Sequence record: OP589283.1
Reading direction: 5' to 3' (one strand)
Length of the DNA stretch: 64,000 nt
In this document: positions 37,216 to 40,927 of the stretch, in pieces
Numbering within the stretch: position 1 is the stretch's first letter
Layout of the letters: each line of letters opens with the position of its first letter
Notes under the pieces: model-generated
Database searches by the model: none
What the model was told of the DNA's origin: nothing
What the model saw: only the letters and a program-made list of their open reading frames with translations
Program-made: the position numbers and the translations under genes

Positions 37216-39405
37216 ATGAAACAAATGCAATTTAATTCGAGCATTGGTCCGGCTCAAAAAATCACGATTCGTGATTTACAAACTCAACTTGGCACCGGTG
37301 TACTGTCAGCCTTAACGGGTAATGAAGCGCTATCTGTGGTAGGTGATAAGCTTAGCACAGTGACCGGCTTTGAACACCTTAGTCAAACCCCTAACGTACA
37401 ACGTGTAGTTGGTGCTATTGCTCAACGTGGTACCGATACCTTTAAAGACTACATGTCAAGTGCTAACTTAGGTTCTGCTTCTTTATACAAAGAACTGGAA
37501 GCTTATGCTGGTGCGGAAGGTTTCTCTCTGCAACAATCTCCTGGTGCTGAAAAATCAATGAAGGCAGTTAACATTGCCTTAAACGCGCAAGCACAACTTC
37601 AAACTGAAGCTGCTGAAGCGATGTTCCGCACCATCACTATTCCTTACGAATATGAACAAATCGATTTCGTTGTTCGTTCTGCGGGTTTAGGTACTTACGT
37701 ATCTGGCGCCAACGCTTTCCAACGCGCTTCTGAATTACGTCCAATTTTCGGTCTGCTGCGCACTGGTGAAATTTTCACCAACGATTCACTGCGTATCTAC
37801 CCAGTTTACCCAGAACAAGCTAACGATCAAGCGCGTGCTAAGTTCGTTCCAGAAGCTGAATTCGCTCCATATGACGTTGTGTACAATCCTGGCGATGCTT
37901 ACGGTCGTGAAGCTCACCGCTCTTCAATGTTGGTTGTTCCTGTTAAACTTGAAAACCTGTTAGGTTTATCTCAAGCACCAGGTCAACGTCCTTGGACAAC
38001 AACTGACGAAATCGAAGCGTCTGCTGTATCTATCGACAAAGTAAAAATCAATGCTCGCTTTAACGGCAAAGACATCGTCTTCTTCGTTAACACCGCGACT
38101 ATGTCAAACAACACTTTCGGTGTGACTACCACTGGTCAAACATCTGATGAACGTGGTTTATCATTAGTAGTTAAAAACCTACCAGCGTCTGCTGTACTTG
38201 ACAAAGACAACAACAGTGCCGTTGCCCTGTTCGCTGATATGACCGCGTTAGGTTATCAACCTTTACTGAGCTTCTCTCTGAAGGGTTCTTTACAACGTCA
38301 AACCAACGAATTTGAACTGTCTTCAGGTTCTGCAACGATCACTGCGGTTTCTGCTGTTAGCGATAAAGAAGGTAAGCCAATCCCAGTTAACAGCATCCAA
38401 GAAGCGCCAGTTAAAACTATGGCACTTTCTTTTGGTGGTTCTGTTACCGGTGCTCACCCACGTCTGAACGTGAACAACATCTCTCAAGGTAACTTCGGTT
38501 ATCGCTTAGAAGTTTTCGATGCTCGTAAGCAATACGCTACTCGTCGTCGCGAACCAATCTCTGTGAAGTACCCAGTTACTAAAGAAGACGTTAACCAAGA
38601 ATCATTGGATGCCGCTATTGAACATATGTCAATTGCGATTAACAACCAATGTTCTAAAGATGCGTTCACCGAAGCGGCTAAACACCTCGAATACATCAAG
38701 TCTATCAACGGTCAAGGTGTAGTGTCTAACCAACAAGGTTCAAACGTTTTAGCGGGTCAACATTTCGTGACTGCAACCGCAGTTTCACGTACTCTGACAC
38801 TGCGTGATGTTATCTCTGTAACGAAGAACGAAGATTTATTCTTAGCGATTTGTGCAGCGTTAATCAACGAAACATCAGATATGGTTGCCGCGCTTGAAAC
38901 TCGTTCTGGTATCGCTTCTATCAAAGAATACGGTGCCATCAACGACATGAACTGGAACCTGATTACCCACCAAAACTTAGCACGTTTCTTCATCAAGTCT
39001 GGTGATATCCGTACTATCGGTGGCTGGTCTCGTATCAACGTGAAAGCGACTAACTTCGACAGCATGATTGGTCAAGCGTACTTAGTACCTGCTGACAACT
39101 CAACTGGTGATAATATCAACCCATTAACTGGTGTTGGTATTAACGTCGTGAAAGAAAACATCGTTGTCCAAGGTAACATGCATCGTGACCAACAACACTA
39201 CGGTGTTCTGTTGACTGTGCCTTCTTACCGCCACTGGGCACTGAACCCAGTTATCGGTCATCTGACCGTAACTGATGCTGCTGAGTTCCTGACTGACGAC
39301 GGTCTGTTAGCAAGCCTGACCAAACTGCGTATTGCTGCGGCTGATGCAGATGGCCTGTTAATCAACGATCCAAACAGCGGTACTCCTGTTAACCCAAATC
39401 CATAA
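37216..39405 (+). CDS. Major capsid protein (phiKZ gp120-like)
   Basis: 729 aa, strongest codon bias; propeptide GNE37/GFE53/GAE101; C-terminal SYRHWALNPVIG; order helicase-MCP-nvRNAP. Confidence 0.93.
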   Translation: MKQMQFNSSIGPAQKITIRDLQTQLGTGVLSALTGNEALSVVGDKLSTVTGFEHLSQTPNVQRVVGAIAQRGTDTFKDYMSSANLGSASLYKELEAYAGAEGFSLQQSPGAEKSMKAVNIALNAQAQLQTEAAEAMFRTITIPYEYEQIDFVVRSAGLGTYVSGANAFQRASELRPIFGLLRTGEIFTNDSLRIYPVYPEQANDQARAKFVPEAEFAPYDVVYNPGDAYGREAHRSSMLVVPVKLENLLGLSQAPGQRPWTTTDEIEASAVSIDKVKINARFNGKDIVFFVNTATMSNNTFGVTTTGQTSDERGLSLVVKNLPASAVLDKDNNSAVALFADMTALGYQPLLSFSLKGSLQRQTNEFELSSGSATITAVSAVSDKEGKPIPVNSIQEAPVKTMALSFGGSVTGAHPRLNVNNISQGNFGYRLEVFDARKQYATRRREPISVKYPVTKEDVNQESLDAAIEHMSIAINNQCSKDAFTEAAKHLEYIKSINGQGVVSNQQGSNVLAGQHFVTATAVSRTLTLRDVISVTKNEDLFLAICAALINETSDMVAALETRSGIASIKEYGAINDMNWNLITHQNLARFFIKSGDIRTIGGWSRINVKATNFDSMIGQAYLVPADNSTGDNINPLTGVGINVVKENIVVQGNMHRDQQHYGVLLTVPSYRHWALNPVIGHLTVTDAAEFLTDDGLLASLTKLRIAAADADGLLINDPNSGTPVNPNP

Positions 39406-39490
39406 ACCCTTATTACTACGGTAATTTAGGTACGGACGTCAATCAAGACGTGGGTGTTTAAAACGATGTAATAAGGGTTACCCCCTTTAT
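39393..39490 (+). promoter_or_regulatory. Candidate -1 frameshift cassette at the MCP 3' end
   Basis: C CCA AAT heptamer (39393-39399), 5-nt spacer, 12-bp helix 39405-39416/39468-39479 or alternative cUACGg hairpin; -1 frame open to TAA 39459-39461. Confidence 0.55.
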
Positions 39491-39500
39491 GTCATAACTA

Positions 39501-39534
39501 CCTACCCCTTCTGGTTAACGCCAGAAGGGGTAGG
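39501..39534 (+). terminator. MCP terminator
   Basis: 14-bp stem CCTACCCCTTCTGG / CCAGAAGGGGTAGG, then GGTTTT. Confidence 0.88.
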
Positions 39535-39603
39535 GGTTTTATGATCACTTTATAAAAACAAAACGCACTATTTATATACGTTTTCATAATTTACCTTATT
39601 TAA

Positions 39604-39624
39604 TTTCAACTCTACATTATTAAC
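39604..39624 (+). promoter_or_regulatory. Candidate early promoter for the nvRNAP-subunit operon
   Basis: TTTCAACTCTACATTATTAA, 17/20 identical to the 56857 copy; nvRNAP genes are expected to be early. Confidence 0.6.
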
Positions 39625-39679: not shown

Positions 39680-40927
39680 ATGTACGGAATACAATTTAGT
39701 ATACTCCATAAATTTGACCGCGCCAGTGTAAAACGCAACATAATGTTTGTTAGTTACGCTGGTGTCGGGGGAGAAATCAAACGTGCGGAGCACGATTACC
39801 TTTCTCCTAAAAATGCAATTGTTGTTAATTTACGTTTAGACATTGCTAACGTAAATGGGTTGTCTTTGAATCCTGAAAATTGTGCGTCGGGATTTGATAA
39901 AAGAATCGTTGAGGCATTAAAGGCTGAACGAGATAAACAGTTAAAAACATTAGTGTTATGTAACCCACACGCCGATGTAGATGTAGGTCATCTTAAATTT
40001 CATGAAGAGCGCCGTAACAGTGTGGAAGACATTTGTGATATGGATGTCTATACTGCTGAAATTTCCGGATTAACTGTAAAGATTATTTTTACTGCGGAAG
40101 AACTTGCAGCGTTAGAAAAGAAAGGGGAACTGTATTCTGATTTACTGGCGATTATCATAGAGTACCCAGAAGCCACGTATACAGAGAAATTCCGTAATAA
40201 GAATGGTGCATTACGTGCGTTAGAGTTTCAACGCATGCGTCGCATTAAAGAGGTTAAAGAACGGTATAAACTATTCGGGGATAACGGTAACGTTTATAAC
40301 TACTTTCTAAACGACCCTGAAAGGCGGGTCGGGGTACTGTACGTTAATCATTTGGGTATGGTGCGTAAAATCCAATCAGTGTCGTTAAATTATTTAAAGA
40401 AAGGATTGTTTATTTCTTTAGGGGAGAATGACCACTACGAAGAATTGATTGTTGAAATAGACGATATTCTTGATGGCAAAAGTGTGTCTTATGGCGTATA
40501 CCTAACAGAAGCACAAGCCAAAATGGGAACGAACAATAGTGAGGAAAATAAACAACTTACTAAGGAATTAGAAAAGACACAGGGGTTTTTAAAGGATAAA
40601 GTTAAAGACCTGGTTCGATTAACGGAACGTGCTGTTAAAGCAGAAGAATTAAATAGTGTGAAAGATAACGAATTAAAGTTACTTAAGCATGAATTGTCAA
40701 TAAAAGAATTATTGATTCGGGGGCGAGAACAAGGAATTAAAAATAAGGAGGATGTGTTTAAATTAAAAGAGTTGGAACAACGCCAAAAAGAATTGAATGA
40801 CAACAGTTTCTTTGGAAAACTTAAACGGTTCTTTAGTGGGCTATTCGAAATCGGTAAACATTTATTCGGTTTTGTGGATGGCGCAGCTAAAGCTAAGACG
40901 GGAGCAAAGGTGCTCGGAATAGGGTAG
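39680..40927 (+). CDS. Conserved protein with C-terminal coiled coil (gp122-like by position)
   Basis: GAGG RBS supports ATG 39680 (track start is TTG 39662). Confidence 0.8.
   Translation: MYGIQFSILHKFDRASVKRNIMFVSYAGVGGEIKRAEHDYLSPKNAIVVNLRLDIANVNGLSLNPENCASGFDKRIVEALKAERDKQLKTLVLCNPHADVDVGHLKFHEERRNSVEDICDMDVYTAEISGLTVKIIFTAEELAALEKKGELYSDLLAIIIEYPEATYTEKFRNKNGALRALEFQRMRRIKEVKERYKLFGDNGNVYNYFLNDPERRVGVLYVNHLGMVRKIQSVSLNYLKKGLFISLGENDHYEELIVEIDDILDGKSVSYGVYLTEAQAKMGTNNSEENKQLTKELEKTQGFLKDKVKDLVRLTERAVKAEELNSVKDNELKLLKHELSIKELLIRGREQGIKNKEDVFKLKELEQRQKELNDNSFFGKLKRFFSGLFEIGKHLFGFVDGAAKAKTGAKVLGIG

Follow-up and report, generated by a model that had tools for sequence, protein, structure and literature searches.

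In phages T7 (10A/10B) and T3 (gene 10), a −1 shift a few codons before the stop of the gene encoding the major capsid protein (MCP) produces a minor capsid subunit with a C-terminal extension, and the heptamer of T3 gene 10 is C CCA AAG. Frameshifts of the G/GT type, for which the lambda heptamer is G GGA AAG, occur in the tail assembly chaperones of tailed phages and fix the ratio of two structural-assembly proteins. In Escherichia coli, X XXA AAY sites, which place an Asn codon in the A site, shift less well than X XXA AAG sites. Lactobacillus phage A2 makes its gp5A/gp5B pair by a −1 shift at a C CCA AAN heptamer that closes the major head gene and is followed by a stem-loop; its long form is named in the title of Garcia et al. 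2004 (cited in PMC10885494) as a second essential capsid component.

The window analysed here is a stretch of 64,000 nucleotides from Shewanella phage FishSpeaker (OP589283), and all the features described below lie on its plus strand. Its MCP gene (37216–39405 in the ORF list) encodes 729 aa with a phiKZ-type HK97 fold and is labeled "major head protein" in GenBank. The product matches PHROG 3231, a family of major head proteins (E 2e-157), and the PhiKZ_MCP family of Pfam (PF25620) was assigned in 91 of 91 MCP homologues. The top match of the AF2 model of FishSpeaker MCP is phiKZ gp120 (PDB 8y6v, E 5e-34, TM 0.75); phiKZ and phiKp24 ranked first in the Foldseek search with this model, and phiKZ gp120 was the sole match in a sequence search against solved structures. 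By both sequence and fold, FishSpeaker MCP is a member of the PhiKZ_MCP (PF25620) family. It shares with phiKZ gp120 and Goslar gp41 not only the MCP fold but also the gene neighborhood, in which the MCP gene follows those for a helicase and a small protein and precedes an unknown gene and then one for an RNA polymerase subunit. No homology to T7 gp10 or A2 gp5 was found among the solved-structure sequence matches or the top Foldseek ranks, and the resemblance to T7, T3, and A2 is one of mechanism, not of descent.

The 3′ end of the FishSpeaker MCP gene, whose last residues (702–729) are predicted to be disordered, reads GTT AAC CCA AAT CCA TAA, with the 0-frame TAA at 39403–39405. As the initial annotation had pointed out, it contains a slippery heptamer, C CCA AAT, in the X XXY YYZ register (39393–39399), one codon 5′ of the stop; just two in-frame X XXY YYZ heptamers occur in the 729 codons of the gene. 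From this site, the −1 frame runs for 20 codons (SINPYYYGNLGTDVNQDVGV) to a TAA at 39459–39461 (extension at 39399–39461), so that the predicted shifted product would have 728 + 20 = 748 aa versus 729 aa for the unshifted one, the same lengths that the initial annotation had given and that the sequence and the ORF list bear out. That annotation overlooked another TAA in the −1 frame (39390–39392), which adjoins the 5′ side of the heptamer and bounds, together with the 0-frame stop, the window open to a shift. Entry into the extension frame is hence confined to 10 nt.

We propose that a minor long form of the capsid protein very probably arises when ribosomes undergo programmed −1 frameshifting at a site one codon 5′ of the MCP stop. 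A ribosome holding CCA in its P site and AAU in its A site would meet a predicted 75-nt hairpin 5 nt downstream, and both tRNAs would re-pair one nucleotide back on CCC AAA (CCA to CCC in the P site, AAU to AAA in the A site). Unshifted ribosomes would add one further Pro before the stop, giving the 729-aa form, while shifted ribosomes would read 20 further codons through the hairpin to the stop at 39459–39461, giving the 748-aa form, whose extra tail would bear a conserved 9-residue motif, [ILV]-P-x-T-x-Y-G-x-L. The shift would probably occur in a minority of ribosomes only, and the long form would presumably be built into capsids. Since an Asn A-site codon is the weaker one in E. coli, shift efficiency at a site of the FishSpeaker type may be low.

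Relatives were found by an alignment-based scan and by exact-protein look-ups; a single-protein scan of viral contigs returned none. Slip sites were counted over 57 distinct gene ends, and motifs and hairpins over the 54 analysed first. The carriers of the signal form a single MCP clade (support 100/99) with one loss. To this EL/RisingSun/FishSpeaker clade belong dozens of uncultured genomes along with Pseudomonas phage EL and the Erwinia phages RisingSun and Joad. The heptamer, the −1 ORF, and the motif are all missing from the sister groups. No frameshift signal was found in phiKZ, OBP, Miami, or the Vibrio phages, nor did phiKZ gp120 or any of ten further cultured phages of the outgroup show one; in contrast to the clade genes, that of phiKZ gp120 ends with CTT AAG CCG TGA, with no heptamer, motif, or comparable −1 ORF. 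The initial annotation had written of phiKZ-like phages, a scope that has to be narrowed to the EL/RisingSun/FishSpeaker clade, as phiKZ itself lacks it. The MCPs of the sister clades end with [LV]-P, and a similar pair, [ILV]-P, stands at the opening of the tail, a side clue that the long form may carry the ancestral MCP C-terminus.

A canonical X XXY YYZ heptamer was found 0–3 codons 5′ of the stop in 50 of the 57 distinct MCP genes of the relatives. In-frame heptamers make up 0.08% of the codons in the rest of these genes, for an expectation near the stop of ~0.3%, so the signal exceeds chance. The types encountered across lineages are CCCAAAC, CCCAAAT, CCCAAAG, AAAAAAC, GGGAAAC, GGGAAAG, and AAACCCG, and at least eight switches of type were counted on the MCP tree, the site being slippery throughout. 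In-frame slippery heptamers elsewhere in the capsid genes of the clade are also about five-fold rarer than predicted from uniform base composition, which suggests selection against accidental slippage. As in FishSpeaker, a stop lies directly 5′ of the heptamer in the −1 frame in many relatives, including RisingSun, L006, L032, L037, and L068, and the shift window measures 10–16 nt in many genomes.

These counts bear on the reading in which no recoding takes place, the heptamer being kept for a C-terminal Pro-Asn and the hairpin acting as a stabiliser of the mRNA 3′ end or as part of a terminator. The MCP gene is late and highly expressed, structured 3′ UTRs with a terminator behind them are common, and a true terminator does follow at 39501–39544. 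However, the residues encoded at the slip site vary (PN, KN, GN, PK, and GK) under an unchanged X XXY YYZ pattern, and the heptamer has CCA for Pro even in the vicinity of CCG codons. Residues upstream of the slip site show no conservation. Considered together with the coding signature of the −1 frame and the form of the hairpin, both described below, these observations make the absence of recoding very unlikely.

The canonical heptamer is absent in seven of the 57 sequences. The gene ends of L038, L045, L058, and L062 carry A ACC CCG TAA in its place, and L055 and L067 have no heptamer near the stop and only weak hairpins. Several lineages thus end with ...C CCG TAA or A ACC CCG TAA, and for these the simplest event would be the slip of a single Pro-tRNA in the P site beside a slowly decoded stop codon, instead of a tandem slip on a heptamer. 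Such a single-tRNA slip is nevertheless extremely improbable as the general explanation, because the last sense codon (T CCA in the window, C GCT in RisingSun) is unable to re-pair in the −1 frame and the heptamer is the sole slippery sequence in the 10-nt shift window. It is a variant of the tandem-slip explanation for a few lineages and not a rival to it for FishSpeaker.

The −1 frame itself has the appearance of a coding sequence. Among the 54 distinct sequences, the motif [ILV]-P-x-T-x-Y-G-x-L retains its Tyr in 54, its Gly in 52, and its Leu in 54, and the codons used are diverse, with GGT, GGG, GGA, and GGC for Gly and all six codons for Leu. Indeed, entropy within the codon of the motif Leu rises from 0 bits at the second position to 1.95 bits at the third, and extension codons 9–13 vary only synonymously within the FishSpeaker subclade. 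This pattern is that of an extension under purifying selection at the protein level in the −1 frame, and the use of six Leu and four Gly codons is hard to reconcile with an unrecoded 3′ UTR. In FishSpeaker, the extension core reads I-N-P-Y-Y-Y-G-N-L (39402–39428), the motif being one residue shorter in this subclade. The initial annotation had named YYY as the motif of the tail, a choice that did not survive the comparison, as YYY is confined to the FishSpeaker subclade while [ILV]-P-x-T-x-Y-G-x-L is the part conserved. The length of the extension in the clade ranges from 12 to 20 aa. No copy of the tail motif was found in the 0 frame of any of the 91 homologous MCPs, and a six-frame search of the 64-kb window returned the motif in the MCP extension only, so it is not a tag common to other proteins encoded in the window.

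Conservation of the motif would be equally well explained if the 22-codon −1 ORF were translated separately as a small free peptide, through independent initiation or re-initiation after the MCP stop. This −1 ORF, however, opens with PK (CCC AAA) immediately past a stop and inside the MCP coding sequence, contains no ATG, GTG, or TTG upstream of the motif in either the FishSpeaker window or RisingSun, and is not associated with a Shine-Dalgarno sequence. With no start codon before the motif, the extension is reachable solely from the MCP frame. A separate peptide would also leave unexplained why a heptamer occupies the first two codons of the ORF in 50 of 57 genes, and this possibility is barely credible.

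A 5-nt spacer (39400–39404), which takes in the final sense codon plus the TA of the 0-frame TAA, separates the heptamer from a candidate stimulatory RNA hairpin of 75 nt (39405–39479) predicted by RNAfold, which agrees with the helix that the initial annotation placed 5 nt past the heptamer. The base stem pairs AACCCTTATTAC (39405–39416) with GTAATAAGGGTT (39468–39479) over 12 bp and is surmounted by an upper stem; the hairpin encloses the entire extension ORF, its 3′ arm lying past the −1 stop. The 176-nt region that contains it has a z-score of −5.8 against shuffles, and the hairpin is also obtained in the consensus fold of the subclade. An Rfam search with the hairpin gave nothing near the gathering score.

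Among the relatives, the hairpin starts 5–7 nt past the slip site in 35 of 54 and closes at or past the −1 stop in 51 of 54 sequences (median z-score −2.7). Since MAFFT brought the heptamer and the TACGG core of 20 diverse 3′ ends into register but not their 3′ arms, structure conservation was scored by an anchored-helix test with in-gene controls instead of a cross-clade covariance model. Anchored helices that run for 8 bp or more with no interruption were found in 65% of the relatives versus 8% at control positions, and 21 distinct helix sequences were counted in the clade. In the lineages whose AAACCCG slip site lies at the stop, the hairpin is shifted accordingly and a 6-nt spacer is retained. 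The initial annotation had proposed following the heptamer, the spacer, and helix covariation through relatives; the heptamer, the 5–7 nt spacing, and the 21 different helices came out in its favor, but RNAalifold found hardly any double substitutions within subclades, because the base stems are invariant there. The case for structure conservation is hence made by stem differences between clades and the anchored-helix control, not by pair-by-pair covariation.

The position of the hairpin also bears on the idea that it is RNA polymerase that slips, the frame being changed in an mRNA one base longer or shorter rather than by the ribosome. Some members do have A-rich sites (A AAA AAC), and the phages of the clade use their own multisubunit RNA polymerases. 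Transcriptional slippage is known at long homopolymer runs, far longer than CCC AAA, whereas most sites of the clade offer runs of three bases only, and a conserved hairpin at a spacing of 5–7 nt is a hallmark of ribosomal −1 shifting. Slippage of the polymerase is highly unlikely to be the source of the long form.

We also considered the hairpin at 39405–39479 as an intrinsic terminator and rejected this assignment, as its interior is long, a T run is lacking, and the terminator scan did not call it, features that speak equally against a terminator-based reading of the locus without recoding. The scan called solely 39501–39534 plus its T run, and with RNAfold this gives the intrinsic terminator of the MCP transcript at 39501–39544, a 15-bp stem followed by a T run that is separate from the frameshift hairpin. 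Relatives possess equivalent G+C-rich hairpins with T runs.

As read from these comparisons, the slip site, the spacer, and the predicted hairpin are conserved in the clade, and the locus presents the elements of a canonical −1 signal, namely an in-register heptamer, a predicted structure 5–9 nt downstream, and an open −1 frame that bears the marks of selection. The initial annotation had named loss of the heptamer with persistence of the structure as an outcome contrary to its proposal; what was found is conservation of the heptamer, the hairpin, and the extension alike, and the comparative evidence strongly supports the predicted −1 frameshift.

The clade site resembles those of T7 and T3 by its position at the 3′ end of the MCP gene and by the predicted C-terminal extension. 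It belongs to the same heptamer family as the site of T3, and clade member L104 has exactly C CCA AAG. However, the MCP lineage is unrelated (phiKZ-type, PF25620, in a T=27-class jumbo capsid), the extension measures 12–20 aa versus about 50 in T7 and has a motif that persists throughout a deep clade, the putative stimulator is a long hairpin with the entire extension ORF inside it, and the A-site codon is mostly AAY (Asn) and not AAG. Compared to phage A2, a small siphovirus with a sizeable extension domain, the tail of the clade is a short linear motif. Canonical X XXA AAZ slippage is shared with lambda G/GT, and clade member L105 has G GGA AAG; conversely, the G/GT extension is a large domain for tail assembly, while the clade site lies at a capsid gene end and adds 12–20 aa.

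The initial annotation had suggested that the long form could be a docking site or a special-vertex subunit. In each hexon of the related phages Goslar and phiKZ, six C-terminal arms of the MCP converge in a central β-barrel, as given in the Goslar cryo-EM preprint (10.64898/2026.04.21.720040). By analogy with these distant homologues, the tail might act at the capsomer axis. If there were room for the tail on some subunits only, this would account for a sub-stoichiometric supply in place of in-frame coding. We put forward, as a tentative and rather doubtful reading, that the tail could serve in docking, as a peptide of limited stoichiometry at the capsomer axis, carried by about one subunit per capsomer in a ratio set by the frameshift rate. 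Were this true, the tail would plug or cross-brace the capsomer center or, alternatively, offer a handle to a clade-specific partner such as a decoration or vertex protein or a procapsid-docking factor for DNA packaging. Extra density or heterogeneity is predicted at the capsomer centers of EL-like capsids and would be absent in phiKZ and Goslar.

The mechanism is of a known kind (T7, T3, and A2), and its occurrence in the EL/RisingSun-like clade is unreported in the literature found. No report was found in literature on FishSpeaker, on frameshifting in jumbo phages, MCPs, or chimalliviruses, or on phiKZ slippery sites, nor in the PRFect paper or a 2026 jumbo-phage review, and the Goslar structure preprint (10.64898/2026.04.21.720040) does not mention a frameshift. 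The GenBank records examined annotate a single MCP product with no mention of frameshifting. A second, unannotated capsid protein is thus predicted for a whole clade of jumbo phages, including the long-studied EL. The clade would also constitute a natural dataset on frameshifting, with many heptamer types, one spacing rule, ~20 stem sequences, and one conserved peptide. The literature search turned up no virion proteomics based on a frameshift-aware database; the RisingSun proteomics paper searched annotated proteins only and does not mention a frameshift. The tryptic peptides predicted from the tail are LIPSTNYGR for RisingSun and SVSPANYGR for EL.

The window matches Shewanella phage FishSpeaker (OP589283; genome 203 kb, host S. 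oneidensis MR-1) with 100% identity. Its 729-aa ORF at 37216-39405 encodes the major capsid protein (MCP), with a match to PHROG 3231 (E 2e-157); Pfam PF25620 (PhiKZ_MCP) is present on all of its homologues, and the top match of its AlphaFold model (pLDDT 77) is phiKZ gp120 (PDB 8y6v, E 5e-34, TM 0.75). The local gene order (helicase, small protein, MCP, unknown gene, and RNA polymerase subunit) is identical in phiKZ, EL, and RisingSun. The final ~28 residues of the FishSpeaker MCP are predicted to be disordered.

The gene ends GTT AAC CCA AAT CCA TAA (stop 39403-39405), and reading the sequence confirmed the slippery heptamer proposed in the initial annotation, C CCA AAT at 39393-39399, in the X XXY YYZ register one codon 5′ of the stop. 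The strong helix claimed 5 nt 3′ of it was also recovered, as a hairpin (39405-39479) with a 12-bp base stem, distinct from the intrinsic terminator that follows it (39501-39544). From 39399, the -1 frame reads SINPYYYGNLGTDVNQDVGV to a TAA at 39459-39461, so that the shifted product would have, as had been annotated, 748 aa against the unshifted 729 aa. Another TAA of the -1 frame lies immediately 5′ of the heptamer (39390-39392); a ribosome can thus move into the extension frame only within 10 nt, across the heptamer and one further codon. These features match the layout of canonical tandem-slippage -1 frameshifting. Independent initiation of the -1 ORF was excluded, as the extension holds no start codon 5′ of its conserved part. 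ARAGORN found no tRNA gene in the whole window (1-64000), so the slip site (Pro CCA, Asn AAU) would be decoded by host tRNAs, unless phage tRNAs lie elsewhere.

MCP gene ends were collected from IMG/VR, JGI metagenomes, GenBank phages, and, by exact-protein look-ups, public assemblies. They amounted to 85 loci of the same clade, 54 of them distinct when compared over 180 nt, and a later fetch added four; eleven cultured phages, including phiKZ, formed the outgroup. In this comparison, which the initial annotation had proposed, a canonical heptamer ending 0-3 codons 5′ of the stop is kept in 50 of the 57 distinct clade members, where ~0.3% would be expected by chance over the last four positions, in-frame heptamers occupying only 31/39,439 codons (0.08%) elsewhere in these genes. 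The types are CCCAAAC (28), CCCAAAT (6), CCCAAAG (1), AAAAAAC (3), GGGAAAC (6), GGGAAAG (1), and AAACCCG, which abuts the stop, with at least eight switches on the MCP tree. The encoded residues shift with the type (PN, KN, GN, PK, GK), and those immediately upstream vary (...NSGTPVNPNP, ...GAGAGTDPNA, ...PGAGSVSPNP). Slipperiness, not protein sequence, is the conserved property of the site. Transcriptional slippage as the source of the frame change is unlikely because most sites have only three-base runs.

Seven sequences depart from the canonical heptamer. Four end A ACC CCG TAA, possibly a Pro-tRNA slip next to the stop. The IMG/VR loci L055 and L067 have no slip site near the stop, just a T5 run retained inside the 37-43 nt -1 window; their hairpins are weak, and the L055 motif carries a Gly to Arg change. 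Locus L107 (Logan), with a 709-aa MCP, has lost the extension, and its gene leads directly into a terminator. In these three lineages, the signal may be in the process of loss or relocation. Within the gene bodies of the 57 members (in the window, 37216-39390), the heptamer frequency of 0.08% of codons compares with ~0.39% under uniform base composition, a scarcity suggesting that chance slip sites are selected against in a gene expressed at very high levels. The sole other in-frame heptamer of the FishSpeaker gene, G GGT TTA (37683-37689, ~codon 156), lies close to the maturation cleavage position of the phiKZ and Goslar MCPs, and the -1 frame after it is open for 14 codons.

The spacer and helix are likewise found in relatives. 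A long hairpin begins 5-7 nt 3′ of the chosen slip site in 35/54 sequences, several others having an additional outer helix that begins earlier; it closes at or past the -1 stop in 51/54, with a median z-score of -2.7 against dinucleotide shuffles. In 35/54 (65%), a helix of 8 bp or more runs without interruption from an anchor 4-8 nt 3′ of the slip site, compared with 8% at random codon positions of the same genes. Members with AAACCCG at the stop place the hairpin 6 nt from AAACCCG, not from the slip position used elsewhere. The relatives have 21 different helix sequences. The 5′ arm codes for the [ILV]-P opening of the tail, while the 3′ arm lies beyond the -1 stop and is hence free to co-vary; with MAFFT, the 3′ arms remained unaligned across clades and the stems were invariant inside subclades, giving no column-wise covariation score. 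No Rfam family matches the hairpin.

Each of the 54 distinct sequences in the first analysis has [ILV]-P-x-T-x-Y-G-x-L in its -1 ORF. Counting codons from the motif's Tyr, position 0 is Tyr in 54/54 (TAC 49, TAT 5), position +1 is Gly in 52/54 (GGT 23, GGG 18, GGA 9, GGC 2), and position +3 is Leu in 54/54 (CTT 14, TTA 10, CTG 9, CTC 8, TTG 7, CTA 6), the Leu entropy being 0 bits at codon position 2 and 1.95 bits at position 3. Position -5 is Ile, Leu, or Val in 53/54 (0.13 and 1.93 bits, respectively). Selection on RNA sequence or structure cannot account for these codon statistics, which mark the -1 frame as protein-coding. Among FishSpeaker subclade members, codons 9-13 of the extension show synonymous differences only, and the last seven residues vary conservatively. 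Two additional members have Leu for Tyr (DLGTL, NLGEL), after CCCAAAG and GGGAAAG sites. The motif is absent from the 0 frame of all 91 homologous MCPs and was not found elsewhere in the 64-kb window. It is very probable, from comparative sequence evidence, that a programmed -1 shift yields a selected, extended MCP.

All extension-bearing MCPs form one clade (support 100/99; 58 rows, one loss) that contains FishSpeaker, Pseudomonas phage EL (tail RRSVSPANYGRLEYPELP), and Erwinia phage RisingSun (tail RLIPSTNYGRLG). The heptamer, a comparable -1 ORF, and the motif are all absent from the sister groups, namely Miami with the Vibrio/Photobacterium Gorgonvirinae, then OBP, Yubaba, AH04, D6, PS1, and AerS_266, and finally phiKZ; the signal therefore arose once, at the base of the EL/RisingSun/FishSpeaker clade. 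Most outgroup MCPs without the frameshift (L015-L024, L109) end in [LV]-P (GKLP, GQLP, DVP, KVP, QVP), resembling the [ILV]-P that starts the tail, and the long isoform may thereby preserve an ancestral C-terminal feature; phiKZ ends LKP, and OBP and AerS_266 end otherwise.

Phages T7 and T3 make capsid isoforms through a -1 shift at the gene end. Lactobacillus phage A2 does so as well (A2 paper cited in PMC10885494). The initial annotation knew of no such report in phiKZ-like phages, and full-text literature searches found none for phiKZ-like, EL-like, or chimallivirus phages; frameshifting is mentioned neither in the RisingSun/Joad paper nor in a 2026 review of jumbo phages nor in the paper on the Goslar structure, and only one MCP product is annotated in GenBank for FishSpeaker, RisingSun, and EL. 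Capsid frameshifting itself is already known; what this clade adds is a conserved tail motif that is new, along with comparative data of unusual richness. According to a preprint (10.64898/2026.04.21.720040), hexons of the Goslar and phiKZ capsids have a β-barrel at their centre, built from the short C-terminal arms of the six subunits; pentons lack this barrel. A tail of 12-20 residues leaving the hexon centre could hardly fit all six chains, and such crowding would give a reason to produce it through frameshifting, never in frame. By analogy, the tail might dock at the capsomer axis, a role we consider rather doubtful.

Past the MCP terminator and ahead of the following gene, which starts with ATG at 39680, CTACATTAT occurs at 39612-39620, its only exact copy in the window. 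The motif CTACATTAT[TC] is kept at the same intergenic position in FishSpeaker-like, RisingSun-like, and EL loci, with TATATTATC or AGATATTATC there in outgroups. The EL copy seems to coincide with an annotated "putative phage promoter" (3518-3536 of the EL locus, L014), and the motif probably acts as the promoter from which a phage RNA polymerase transcribes the downstream gene.
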